Source: Trichoplax adhaerens
Taxonomy: Eukaryota > Animalia > Placozoa
Assembly: GCF_000150275.1 (NCBI RefSeq)
Contig: NW_002060948.1
Location: forward strand, 5,254,336 to 5,318,335
Direction of reading: 5' to 3'
DNA length: 64,000 nucleotides
Below, piece by piece: positions 8,944-18,695 of the stretch (within the stretch, counting starts at the first letter, position 1; each line of letters starts with the position of its first letter). The notes under the pieces are model-generated. The model was not told where the DNA came from and searched no databases. It saw only the letters and a list, made by a program, of their open reading frames with translations. The translations under genes were made by a program, and so were the position numbers.

Positions 8944-9615
8944 CATGAACGGCCTCACACTTGATCAAAAAGTCCGTCCATCCTACGTACTGTACACACT
9001 GAAACATGTACTGTACTTTGTTAATCCTTGACGTGCAATGTACTGTACAGTACAGTACTGTTTTAGTGTACTGTACTGTAGAACTGTACAGTACTGCGCA
9101 TGTTCAAAGCGTACTGTATGTACACTGTACAATACAGTACAGGGGAGTTCAGTATTACAGTCGTCCATGACATGAACGGCCTCGCACTTGATCAAAAAGT
9201 CCGTCCATCCTACATACACACTGAAACATTTTCCTACAGTACTTTGTTAATCATTAACGTGCGCTGTACTGTACTGTACTGTACTGTACACTGTGTACAG
9301 TACAGTACAGAGTGTCCAAAAATAATCCCAGCGCACAAATTTAAAATTAGTATTGCCAAATTGTGCAGTAATTTGCCAAAAAAATGTACCGAAATGTAGA
9401 GTAATACTGTAACCTATCATAATCTGAAAACACTGTACTGTAGGGTTACAATACACTACTGTAGTGTAGTGCGTACAGTACTGTACTGTACAGTACAGTC
9501 CTGTACTGTGTACAGTACTGCGCATATTCAAAGCGTACTGTACTGTACACTGTACAGTACTGTCCGTACGGTACAGTACAGTACAGCACAGTTCAGTATT
9601 ACAGTAGTCCATGAC
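8944..9615 (+). repeat. Tandem duplication: copy 1 at 8944-9170, copy 2 at 9171-9615 (copy 2 expanded)
   Basis: Both copies begin catgaacggcctc(a/g)cacttgatcaaaaagtccgtccatcctac. They share ordered anchors acactgaaaca, actttgttaatc, gtactgcgcat(g/a)ttcaaagcgtactgta and gttcagtattacagt(c/a)gtccatga. Confidence 0.9.
9308..9435. mobile_element. Possible degenerate Tc1/mariner-type MITE or TIR remnant
   Basis: A 128-bp segment present only in duplication copy 2 and flanked by TA on both sides. It begins CAGAGTGTCCAAAAA, resembling Tc1/mariner TIR starts, and ends GAAAACACTG (7/10 inverted match). Confidence 0.4.
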
Positions 9616-10773
9616 GGTACTATGTACTGTACACTGTGCACATTCGATTCCAATCATGACGTAATTGTAAGTAGAGCTGCCGATGTCCAGCGTTACATAA
9701 AATGCCCAAAACTCGGTATCAGCACTATAGTTCAGTATCACTGACTGCCAGTTAGGGTTAGCAGTGTGGAAGATGTAGATAGATTCAACTCGAAGAAAGT
9801 CCCCAACATTGGGCGCTGTTGAATTTGGTCAACTGTTCAATAAGCAGTTTCAAGGTAATAAGAGGTAAGTTAGCAGCCATTAAAAGAATGATGTAGATTA
9901 CAATCATTGGATTGCATCTATCTTGCGTTATCAAATGACGGATTAAATTGATATGACTACCATGGGCTTACTAGTTTATACAATATGTTTTAGAAGCATC
10001 ATATTTTGCTCTAAAACTGTTTGTCTTGAATGCACACGGAAAACTCTACTTTTTAAGCGCTTTGTTATGATCGCCGACAGTTGTTGTTAGTACTGTACAT
10101 GGACATACAGTGATTACTTTATTGTATAATAACGCCCAGTTAAACTTCTGTATTAATACGTTATAAACAGAGTAAAATTTATTTTAACAGTAGCTTTAAC
10201 TTTATAATGGCAGCTCGGATCAAATCCAACAGCTCCTTGTAATTATTAATTCCATCATGAGCCGTTTTTCGTTGTGCCGAGTAGTACTACGGATCAGCAA
10301 AACAGATGCGCATATACTTACTATACCCGTATATGTATACTAGTACAGAAAAAAGTCTTCGATACAAGTATTTAGAACGTTCTGTTGTACCATATCATCA
10401 CTAATAGAGAATTCTGATGTTGTGTAATTGAAAGATTAGATAGTTGCCTTTGTATCATTTACCTTGTATTGTGTTATATCAGTCTACCGTTTAGTTTGTT
10501 AGATAGAACAATTATGGACAATCAGGCCCAGTAATAGTAAATTAACTGTAAATTGAATCGTTACTCCATACAAATAAGTAGATGTTTATGTGTTACTACT
10601 CGTGTAGTTAATACTATATACGCGTACAATGTGGTATCAATTTGATGCTGGTGAATTTCTGTCATAAAAGAGATAATGAAGTTTCAATTTACATCGTTGA
10701 ATTGAATGCAATTCAACCTTTTGTAGCATATCTGTGAACGGACTCTGCCCCACTTGCGCTAAGATTTCGAAAC

Positions 10774-14527: not shown

Positions 14528-15091
14528 ATGGCCGAAGTAACTTGTTCCGACAAGGATAACGCTGTGTTAAATTGCATTTTCAATCCTCACCTGCCGCTAG
14601 GTGATGCCTCAGCGGCCACTGCAAAACCAAGTGATACTTTAATTGATAGTGAATATGATTCGCAGTTACTAGAACGAGCGAAGCAATTAGAAGTAGAAGG
14701 GATCAAGCATGCGGAAAGAGGAGACGTGGCTAGTGCAATCAACAAGTTTAGTGAATCGATTCAGCTTTTGCCTAGCAGACCGTCCGGTTATAATAATCGA
14801 GCGCAAGCACTTCGATTACATGGAGACATCGATGGTGCAATGGCAGATCTTGACAAAACCATTGAATTCAGTTCTGGGAAAGGATTGTCTGCATCACAAG
14901 CTTATACCCAACGAGCTTTGCTTAAGAAATTATCAGGTGATGACGACGCTGCGTTGGATGATTTTAAACGTGCGGCGGCGTTAGGAAACGACTTTGCAAA
15001 AGCACAAGTTGTCGAAATGAATCCTTATGCTGCTATGTGTAACCAAATGCTTAGTTCAGCTTTTAAGAAACTTAAAGGGGAAAATTCTTAA
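14528..15091 (+). CDS. TTC36: Tetratricopeptide repeat protein 36, single coding exon, 187 aa
   Basis: N-terminal D-x-AVLNCIFNPHLPLG, TPR motifs (SGYNNRAQALRL, QAYTQRALL) and C-terminal AAALGNDFAKAQVVEMNPYAAMCNQML, all typical of TTC36. Confidence 0.93.
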   Translation: MAEVTCSDKDNAVLNCIFNPHLPLGDASAATAKPSDTLIDSEYDSQLLERAKQLEVEGIKHAERGDVASAINKFSESIQLLPSRPSGYNNRAQALRLHGDIDGAMADLDKTIEFSSGKGLSASQAYTQRALLKKLSGDDDAALDDFKRAAALGNDFAKAQVVEMNPYAAMCNQMLSSAFKKLKGENS

Positions 15092-17283: not shown

Positions 17284-18695
17284 TTACATTTTTGCTACAA
17301 CATCAGATAATATAGCGGAATAATTTACATTTTCTGTGAGGACAGGTAAATCGATTGTAGTGAAACTATTAACGTCCATTTTCATGATCGCTAGGGCTGG
17401 AGGATTTAAATCTTTCTTCGATTCATGAAGTGATAAACTTGGGAAATTAACACTCAAGTAAGGATCTTCTTCATAATCAGGAGCATTCATAAGCCTGGAC
17501 TTTCTGGACGGCCTGATCATAATATGAATAAAAGCCTTATTTAGTATCATACTGAGATGTTAATTTGTAACTGTTAATGAATATATAGACTCATAGCTGA
17601 ATGTCTATAACACTGAAATCGAATACAATTTACGTCAAGACTATAAAAATTTGGCAATCTTCCATTCAGACAATTATAAAGTTTCTATATTCTCTTTAAG
17701 GTATTTAAATTAAGTATAAATCTGAATTCTATCAGGCATACAGTATATAAATAAGATTGTTTACCTTCCACGTTTAGTGGTTGGTGTAGACTTCTTATTC
17801 TGATCTTGTGCGCCATCAAATAAGCGAAATAAGAGATGCGGATCTCCATGAGTAATTTTTTTAAACTTTGCTGGGCGCGGTAAGATTTTTTCTCCGGGAG
17901 GAGTAACTGGTCTGGTGGATGCTATATCTTCGTAGCTGTCATGTACAAATAGTGGAGGTAATGATGTTGGTAGAGGCTGGCGCGATGTTTCCGAAGTTTC
18001 TAGCTCCTGCCAAAACGATTGGGGTAGGGCTCTTTGCCTCATTGGTAATGGCTCTGCATAAATAAGGATCACTTTATTATAGCAATTTACATAATTGAGC
18101 ACTGTAACATCCATATAAACTACCGAGATCAGTCTGTGTTACATATTTATATTGTCTATTAGAATACTGTAGAAAGCTTCAATAAACCAATTTGTCGATC
18201 AATTTGATTGTGTAGCAAATAGAATGTATTAATATAGTAATAATTTAGTCATCACACCGTTACAGTATGAAATACACGTGATAATATTTGATTTCTAAGT
18301 CTGTTTGAAAAAATGCTGTACTGGACAGTAAAATTTAAAAAATTTTAGAAAATTGATTTCATTTAGTTTGCAATAATGTCAAAATTCACCCGATCAAACG
18401 AGACTTATATTTATTACCAGTTTCATTTGTAAGGTCTACTACCCTATGCTAAATAATAGTGATATTATTAGTGTGCCGTACCTTTCATTCGTCGAATTCT
18501 AAGAGAGTGCTCTCGGCATTTCTTTCCTAAGGTCGACGGCGGTTTTTCAATTTCAGATTGTTTCTTCTTAATTTTATCTATGCGCGGAAGTTTGATGTAT
18601 TCTAAATCCGTATTAATGTCAAATTGAACGGGTTCAGACTTGCTGTTATTTCTCCTATTACTATTACTTGGGTTTGAGAGTAGTTTTAGCGACAT
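17284..18695 (-). CDS. Uncharacterised 243-aa protein with a YAP/FAM181-type TEAD-binding omega-loop motif and an AT-hook-like motif; exons 18695-18482, 18053-17765, 17512-17284
   Basis: Three ORF-track segments join via GT-AG in phase (1, 2), giving ...RIRRMKEPLPMRQRALPQSFWQE...DPHLLFRLFDG...KRGRPSRKSR...EEDPYL...NYSAILSDVVAKM*. Confidence 0.8.

Follow-up and report, generated by a model that had tools for sequence, protein, structure and literature searches.

A three-exon gene of Trichoplax adhaerens encoding a candidate WW-less TEAD partner with a YAP-type omega loop followed by an LxxLF helix

Hippo signalling ends at TEAD, and it is the TEAD-bound cofactor that decides between growth and arrest; to our knowledge, very few TEAD partners are known besides YAP/TAZ and the Vestigial-like proteins. 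The 64,000-nucleotide (nt) stretch of Trichoplax adhaerens DNA analysed here, referred to below as the window, holds on its minus strand a three-exon gene for a protein of about 243 amino acids (aa). Its whole coding region occupies positions 17284-18695 (G000:C1409:5271619-5273030), a model drawn from the sequence and its open reading frames (ORFs), a family hidden Markov model (HMM) and a coral ortholog. An earlier reading of the same letters, hereafter the original prediction, had described in this region a YAP-type omega loop, an LxxLF helix placed after the loop instead of before it, and an AT-hook, and had proposed a WW-less TEAD cofactor different from YAP. The minus strand does contain these three motifs, close to where they had been located: the loop runs from 18051 to 18004, DPHLLFRLFDG from 17844 to 17812, and KRGRPSRK spans the junction of exons 2 and 3.

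The gene is made up of three minus-strand open stretches that join in frame through canonical GT..AG introns (exon boundaries are marked below by a slash). Exon 1 (18482-18695), which is inferred by us, consists of 71 codons plus one base (MSLKLL...RIRRMK); an in-frame TAG stands three codons ahead of its ATG, it is Lys/Arg-rich without the N-terminal modules of bilaterian homologs, and it ends in phase 1 at the donor AAAG/GTACGG. It is followed by intron 1 (18054-18481, 428 nt, GT..AG, phase 1), found at the same position and in the same phase in the coral. Exon 2 (17765-18053), between the acceptor tatgcag/AG and the donor GGAAG/gtaaac, ends in phase 2 and encodes the conserved core of the protein, that is, the omega loop, LPPLF, RPVTPPGE, the strand-helix module and KRG. 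Intron 2 (17513-17764, 252 nt, GT..AG, phase 2) falls inside the second Arg codon of RGR, and exon 3 (17284-17512) starts after the acceptor atcag/G and finishes with a TAA stop at 17284-17286. Run against the six-frame translation of the window, the family HMM had only two matches, exon 2 with an E value of 1.2e-29 and exon 3 with one of 9.5e-7. The last G of exon 1 and the AG that opens exon 2 form the conserved acidic residue before PLPM, a Glu here and Glu or Asp in the family. Exon 1 is indirectly supported, since its phase-1 end supplies the G of this Glu codon and the arrangement in Orbicella is identical.

In Orbicella the ortholog is likewise built of three exons, and its introns agree in position and phase with those of Trichoplax: exon 1 ends CGAG/GTACGT in phase 1, one codon ahead of PLPM, exon 2 ends GGAAG/gtgaga, and exon 3 starts ag/ACCA, splitting the same Arg of RGR/P. 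In a second placozoan, genomic contigs (Logan SRR30664516 and SRR30664517) contain the same exon 2 and intron, and continue into an exon 3 that reads KRG/R/PSRKSRL. Identity between both placozoans in exon 2 is 72%, and the ratio of nonsynonymous to synonymous substitution rates (dN/dS) is 0.09 for exon 2, 0.10 for exon 3 and 0.09 over 170 codons (Nei-Gojobori); dS is around 1.7 and saturated, so that the ratio is only approximate. These comparisons indicate that the Trichoplax gene is real and under purifying selection, with exons 2 and 3 as the part of the model that they establish.

Exon 2 opens with the omega loop, PLPMRQRALPQSFWQE (18004-18051, minus strand), a TEAD interface-3 motif. The exon matches Pfam PF15238 TEADIR3 ('Omega loop, TEAD interacting region 3') with 31.7 bits and an E value of 1.7e-7, the gathering cut-off of this model being 26 bits. 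The positions reported as important in the YAP loop are M86, R87, R89, L91, S94, F95 and an aromatic residue at 96, which is Trp in FAM181A (PMC7784741). In PLPMRQRALPQSFWQE, M, R, L, S, F and W correspond to YAP M86, R89, L91, S94, F95 and aromatic 96, and the equivalents of R87 and P92 are likewise kept, in line with the original prediction that all key loop positions would match. Across the family P, M, R, A, P, S and F of the loop are invariant, and the hot-spot residues M, R, L, S and F plus the aromatic show no change in 95 members. The sole sequence match of exon 2 in the PDB is the FAM181A peptide crystallised on TEAD (6l9f_C), whose VPMRKRQLPASFWEE aligns to LPMRQRALPQSFWQE with 11/15 identical residues, the closest loop found, and the likeness to FAM181A is confined to the loop. 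The profile built for the family matches the loops of YAP1, FAM181A and Vg in solved TEAD complexes of the PDB (E ~1e-3). With Pfam, TEADIR3 was the only domain detected in the three exons and in the 10 homologs scanned (26-32 bits in the latter); no WW domain appeared in any of them, as had been anticipated. These matches assign the loop to the class of motifs that occupy TEAD interface 3 in the solved YAP, FAM181A and Vg complexes.

The whole 105.6 Mb assembly (1414 contigs) was scanned in six frames with TEADIR3, and only two loci scored above the cut-off, the present gene (34.1 bits, E 7e-6) and YAP (27.8 bits). A third, weak locus (L003, 17.8 bits) was dismissed because it has no plausible ORF. 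The YAP locus (L002) encodes MDQKPQPVVHERHDSKEELERLFNVLNSQNNPTVPMRDRRLPYSFFQGP and contains, letter for letter, the Trichoplax adhaerens YAP peptide 15-49 of XP_002108065.1 printed in PMC7784741, which makes the present gene a separate one and agrees with the earlier statement that its product is not YAP. By this identity the assembly is that of T. adhaerens or of an organism indistinguishable from it. The first YAP coding exon (L002:1402-1866, plus strand; G000:C1414 around 7771449) carries LERLF, a 4-residue linker and then PMRDRRLPYSFF; with hmmscan it reaches 24.3 bits on TEADIR3, just below 26, so the loop of the present gene scores higher. The TEAD-binding peptide of Trichoplax YAP binds human TEAD with a half-maximal inhibitory concentration of 880 nM (PMC7784741). 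As for TEAD itself, a single YAP-binding domain exists in the Trichoplax genome, divided among at least four small exons.

The family search that the original prediction had proposed was done with HMMER, using exon 2 against 1.84 billion representative proteins. It gave 41 matches, most of them aligned over nearly the entire exon, beyond the loop, and a profile built from 24 members extended the set to 117 proteins. Cnidaria are represented by the corals Orbicella, Pocillopora and Desmophyllum and the scyphozoan Sanderia; lophotrochozoans by molluscs, annelids (Owenia, Lamellibrachia), nemerteans and Lingula; chelicerates by scorpions, horseshoe crab and ticks; crustaceans by barnacles, decapods and a copepod; basal insects by a termite, stick insects, locusts and a mayfly; and deuterostomes by crinoids, sea urchins, amphioxus and the tunicates Styela and Ciona. 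The idea of a branch peculiar to an early-branching animal has to be abandoned, given a family whose range extends from Placozoa and Cnidaria as far as tunicates. These searches, which were limited by length and shared words, retrieved no member from vertebrates, Drosophila or nematodes, and this is therefore absence of evidence only. Under the same limits, neither the 117 profile matches nor the region searches included FAM181-named or vertebrate proteins: a region search with the Lingula loop returned 8 candidates, all of the present family, and another with a 744-aa Styela member returned tunicates only.

All named members are either 'uncharacterized' or carry misleading low-complexity names, such as 'CARMIL C-terminal domain-containing', 'serine/threonine-protein kinase phg2-like', 'nucleolar and coiled-body phosphoprotein 1-like' or 'DDB_G0271670', which apparently derive from low-complexity N-termini. 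A family fragment listed in EukProt under 'Digyalum oweni' (GHVL01029080) falls, at 90% identity, into a cluster with Littorina saxatilis proteins and is almost certainly host contamination of the transcriptome of this gregarine parasite. With regard to the family having been called unrecognised, its proteins already bear the Pfam TEADIR3 label in databases, and to that extent the term does not apply. The literature searched makes no mention of the helix after the loop, of the KRGRP cluster or of the C-terminal motifs. A literature search by member accessions and LOC identifiers found nothing.

The consensus order of conserved elements begins, in bilaterians only, with GGKRxPS..SDEE and SSTASGPxYVRPPGFxHH, followed by a Lys-rich stretch. 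Then come (K/R)(E/D)PLPM(K/R)LRALPQSFWQQP, LPPL and (V/I)RP(V/I)TPPEE, and after these RK(V/I)(T/S)VxNTDLLFKLF(D/E)GVEEE, KRGRP(K/R)(K/R), (E/D)DP(Y/F/C) and LFPxLSLE, until GDKxxxLPSLxVEQNYSQMLSELVxxΦ closes the protein at its extreme C-terminus. No module between the loop and the C-terminal residue is missing from the Trichoplax protein, as follows from the matches of the family HMM to exons 2 and 3. The bilaterian N-terminal modules (GGKRxPS...SDEE and SSTASGPxYVRPPGF) were not found by the family HMM anywhere in the window. Corals, too, are largely without SSTASGPxYVRPPGFxHH and GGKRxPS...SDEE. The PPGF core of SSTASGPxYVRPPGFxHH resembles a GYF-domain ligand.

The second element of the original prediction, the helix, is part of the strand-plus-helix module KKITHGDPHLLFRLFDG (17812-17862, minus strand). 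Within it DPHLLFRLFDG covers 17812-17844, with LLFRLF at 17835-17818 and the LxxLF core LFRLF at 17832-17818; D70, the first residue of DPHLLFRLFDG, lies 53 residues past the last residue of the loop. The order of motifs was counted in the 93 members in which loop and C-terminal tail are both present, taking LxxLF as valid if non-proline. It occurs downstream of the loop in 90 of them and upstream in none, at a distance of 50-179 aa (median 65), while the three remaining members show near-variants (WIFQLF, FLFKRLF); by chance, given the composition of the family, about 0.03 LxxLF motifs would be expected per 180 aa. The loop-first, helix-later order is thus no accident of Trichoplax, and this reversed arrangement is a genuine and apparently undescribed feature of the family. 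The only candidate element upstream of the loop is a lophotrochozoan L-x-[ED]-G-[FL]-KKR, situated 25-30 aa before it. Variation is absent, or nearly so, at both Leu residues and at the Phe of the helix; a strand-like [VI]-[TS]-V and T-D precede them, and D/E-x-V follows. These flanks resemble those of the YAP/TAZ helix, as judged from known features of YAP/TAZ and from the Trichoplax YAP sequence. A classical nuclear export signal and an eh1 motif were considered by eye for this helix and dropped, the former because its common spacing classes do not fit and the latter for lack of fit. The PDB chains that the module does retrieve (OspA, DNAJB1 and the yeast Cac1 winged-helix segment ITDPMDLLRLFDGVQDS, E 2.2) are at chance level.

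The basic cluster KRGRPSRK is encoded in two parts, K-R-G (17775-17767) with the AG of the split Arg (17766-17765), together 17765-17775, and the last base G of that Arg (17512) with P-S-R-K (17511-17500), together 17500-17512, both on the minus strand. The Arg codon is consequently split AG/G across the exon 2/3 junction, and the phase-2 intron that splits it is at the same place in the second placozoan and in Orbicella. The sequence K-R-G-R-P-(K/R)-(K/R) is the AT-hook core of HMGA proteins with its basic flanks. RGRP is found in 76 of the 93 members, typically as KRGRPKK or RRGRPRK.

Other elements were counted in 95 members, after adding tunicate proteins. LPPLF (17947-17961) lies 15 aa past the loop, and LPP[LVI] is found within 35 aa of the loop in 95/95. 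RPVTPP(GE) (17896-17913) is a conserved proline-directed Thr motif, with RPx[TS]P present in 84/95; the family form (V/I)RP(V/I)TPP(E/D)E, RPVTPPGE in Trichoplax, fits a proline-directed kinase site (PxTP). An ELM-style FBW7 degron pattern, [LIVMP].{0,2}TP..E, is found in 56/95 members versus 3.6% of shuffled segments, and RPVTPPGE may serve as a phosphosite or degron in phosphorylation-controlled stability. Exon 3 encodes the motif pair EDPYLSVNFPSLSL (17428-17469), in which DP[YFC] is conserved in 94/95 and [FLV]PxL in 95/95, and the C-terminal motif LPVLTENVNYSAILSDVVAKM-COOH (17287-17349), which aligns to the family LPSLxVEQNYSQMLSELVxxΦ-COOH. All these elements are on the minus strand.

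An AlphaFold run on the Lingula ortholog with the family alignment gave a mean predicted local distance difference test score of 52 and no fold. Short helices were predicted at DLLFKLF (230-236), after DPF (278-284 and 290-293) and at the C-terminus (330-340), and no helix in residues 1-160. According to this model, the protein is a disordered one that acts through short linear motifs, in the manner of YAP's TEAD-binding domain. Neighbours in the ESM Atlas (NEXMIF/DUF4683) were rejected, their scores of 0.79-0.82 being at chance level; Pfam DUF4683 matched neither the homologs nor the Trichoplax genome. Structure-search rows, with template modelling (TM) scores of at most 0.30, were likewise dismissed as meaningless for a disordered model.

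Elsewhere in the window, the plus strand has at 14528-15091 an ORF of 187 aa without introns. Located around 2.2 kb away from the gene's 3' end, it codes for a small protein with TPR repeats (TPR_2 36.5 bits, TPR_1 33.9 bits) and shows no evident link to the TEADIR3 gene. At 8980-9750, overlapping ORFs on both strands are rich in CTVQYSTV/TVLYCTV repeats, which points to a short tandem DNA repeat.

Taking the above into account, we consider it reasonably likely that the gene represents, as the placozoan ortholog, an ancient family of small, disordered nuclear proteins, present in Placozoa, Cnidaria and Bilateria, and that its product is a second, WW-less partner of TEAD. The omega loop, the one element of the family recognised so far, assigns it to the YAP/TAZ/FAM181/PERCC1 group. 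On sequence grounds the locus is an expressed-type, selectively constrained gene, and its product is probably a WW-less Hippo-pathway partner of TEAD and not YAP. With its M, R, L, P, S, F and W, the loop would insert into the YAP-binding domain of the only TEAD in Trichoplax, at interface 3, and the protein would therefore compete with YAP for TEAD. The strand-plus-LxxLF helix, 50-180 residues downstream, would most likely add affinity at TEAD interface 1/2, resulting in a circularly permuted YAP-type TEAD-binding domain with a long, flexible, Pro-rich linker. The interface-3 pocket is ~18 Å away from the C-terminal end of the interface-2 helix, as given in a published review, and a Pro-rich linker of at least 50 residues could join both interfaces in reverse order, since it has only this gap plus the length of the helix to cover. 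KRGRP(K/R)(K/R) would bring the protein into the nucleus and might touch the AT-rich minor groove beside the TEAD site, and the C-terminal motifs (DPY...FPxLSL and LPxL..NYSxxLSELV-COOH) could recruit an effector deciding between activation and repression. Family membership, the conservation and order of the motifs, purifying selection and disorder are established by the analyses above; TEAD binding, use of interface 2, contact with DNA and transcriptional outcome are deduced from conserved motifs.

Several results weigh against this interpretation or parts of it. FAM181A has been published as binding TEAD through the loop alone, and weakly, so that possessing the loop is no proof of a strong or physiological partner. 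Docking of the LxxLF helix on TEAD interface 1/2 can be argued for only weakly from its sequence, because the module alone retrieves no YAP, TAZ or VGLL chain from the PDB and, once L, L and F are masked, a position-specific scoring matrix of the flanks matches the helix of Trichoplax YAP with a marginal p of ~0.05. RGRP is lost in 17 of the 93 members (gastropods and some others), 15 of which keep another basic cluster, and Pfam AT_hook was not reported in the homologs up to E 10, a search in which the HMMER filters drop very short motifs. Of the AT-hook originally proposed, the core and its basic flanks are there in most members. Since several lineages replace RGRP by basic clusters, a nuclear localisation signal is at least as likely a role for KRGRP as a minor-groove anchor; it is the safer reading, and minor-groove contact a possibility. 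Exon 1, finally, has no match to the family HMM in the six-frame translation of the window, and no support from homology.

This last fact, and the failure to recover an annotated Trichoplax protein in the searches, would be expected if the ORFs had been combined by chance or belonged to a pseudogene, an explanation that is effectively refuted by the low dN/dS with respect to the second placozoan (saturated dS notwithstanding), by the shared exon structure in the coral and by frames that are intact and keep all family motifs through the C-terminal residue. It is very improbable, too, that the loop serves a partner other than TEAD, without a role in Hippo output. The motif is just 16 residues long and the family is known here from sequence, but the loop scores above the Pfam gathering threshold, every YAP hot spot is invariant over more than 600 million years of divergence, only YAP shares the motif in the Trichoplax genome, and solved complexes (YAP, TAZ, FAM181A/B, Vg) show this motif class on TEAD. 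A less remote alternative, which we nevertheless find unlikely, is that the gene is a placozoan ortholog of FAM181 or PERCC1, of known architecture and new only in its species. The loop is closest to that of FAM181A, with Trp at the position of YAP F96 as in FAM181A; PF15238 was originally the FAM181 family, and the spread of FAM181/PERCC1 in invertebrates, namely Lingula, Crassostrea, Lottia, Mizuhopecten, Biomphalaria, Branchiostoma and sea urchin, with Drosophila and C. elegans excluded (PMC9710580), resembles that of the present family. However, FAM181B and PERCC1 have LxxLF before the loop and an N-terminal alpha-helix, whereas no upstream LxxLF was found here in any of the 93 members, and the bilaterian N-terminal element is a Pro/Gly-rich SSTASGPxYVRPPGFxHH that is coil in AlphaFold and is missing from Trichoplax. 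In addition, none of the 117 profile matches is a vertebrate protein or one named FAM181 or PERCC1, the comparison with both resting on their descriptions, and the literature searched makes no reference to a downstream helix, a KRGRP cluster or a C-terminal motif. If the invertebrate 'FAM181' rows in PMC9710580 are the present family, this would be known by label, and the helix, KRGRP and the C-terminal motif would be what is new.

The alternative that we take most seriously, even if it has a clearly smaller chance than our preferred reading, accepts that the loop binds TEAD, but assigns the LxxLF helix to another partner or to an intramolecular or regulatory role, and sees KRGRPxK as a nuclear localisation signal only. 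There would be no permuted domain, in agreement with a review according to which FAM181A and FAM181B bind TEAD at interface 3 only, and no DNA anchor, consistent with the exchange of RGRP for basic clusters in gastropods and others and with the silence of AT_hook. The helix has flanks without significant likeness to YAP, and short hydrophobic helices are common ligands of many domains. On the other side, its L, L and F equal the loop in invariance, the motif is the exact interface-2 consensus of YAP/TAZ with flanks like those of YAP/TAZ, and even the minimum 50-residue Pro-rich linker amply spans the ~18 Å plus the helix. At the opposite end, our preferred reading of a second TEAD partner has a more ambitious form, in which the family is a fourth ancient lineage of omega-loop TEAD cofactors, dating back at least to the placozoan-cnidarian-bilaterian ancestor, with a permuted domain, an AT-hook by the TEAD site, a C-terminal effector motif and the standing of sole YAP competitor in Trichoplax; such a family might have been overlooked because it goes undetected in vertebrates, Drosophila and C. 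elegans. We put this forward as a tentative and rather doubtful proposal.

A family that is conserved in most invertebrate phyla and has gone unstudied, and whose Trichoplax loop fits the TEADIR3 model better than that of its own YAP, could be a default competitor of YAP or an alternative Hippo output in corals, molluscs, annelids, sea urchins, amphioxus and Ciona, organisms that serve regeneration and evo-devo work. Having LxxLF after the loop, it would offer a natural test of whether the three interfaces of TEAD can be engaged in any chain order, a question that bears on the design of TEAD-blocking peptides. With one TEAD, one YAP and the present protein, Trichoplax would be the simplest system for testing the idea.

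When the family is set beside known systems, likenesses and differences can be listed with each of them. It has in common with HMGA-type AT-hooks the RGRP core with basic flanks, of which it has a single copy. Vestigial/VGLL proteins are also WW-less TEAD cofactors that compete with YAP, and Drosophila Vg and VGLL2 carry an omega loop, but they have the Tondu helix, VxxHF, before the loop; no Tondu motif was found in the translated exons, and the loop is the sole match to Vg. The group of YAP/TAZ, FAM181 and PERCC1 has been defined by consecutive interface-2 (LxxLF) and interface-3 (loop) elements (PMC9710580; Sanchez-Pulido et al., 2022). Loop match aside, FAM181 and PERCC1 were set apart from the present family by means of their published descriptions. 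PERCC1 is similar in being small, Pro/Glu-rich and predicted to bind TEAD via both elements, with the Ser equivalent to YAP S94 kept, and in its presence in echinoderms, molluscs, annelids as well as chelicerates, and its absence from Drosophila and C. elegans (PMC9710580). In human PERCC1, however, the interface-2 element comes first and the interface-3 element directly after, in residues 173-222 of 275, preceded by an N-terminal helix homologous to that of FAM181, a trait that both share (PMC9710580), while the present family lacks an upstream LxxLF and has ~180 conserved residues past the loop. FAM181A/B (6SEN, 6l9f) are likewise WW-less and largely disordered, with a YAP-type loop ending in SFW and matching PF15238. 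FAM181B has LxxLF on the N-terminal side, 54 residues from the loop (PMC7784741), and FAM181A has none, in contrast with the LxxLF after the loop described here; FAM181 has a conserved N-terminal helix and has not been described with the KRGRP, DPY/FPxLSL or C-terminal NYSxxLSELV of the present family. YAP/TAZ, lastly, share with it the hot spots of the loop, an LxxLF helix after a short strand-like segment and intrinsic disorder. The Trichoplax protein lacks their WW domains, coiled coil and activation domain as well as the -TWL PDZ motif, and is encoded by a gene separate from that of Trichoplax YAP. Above all, YAP/TAZ present interfaces 1, 2 and 3 in this order, with a linker of ~12 residues, whereas in the present family the interface-3 element comes first and is followed by the interface-1/2-like module after 50-179 aa.

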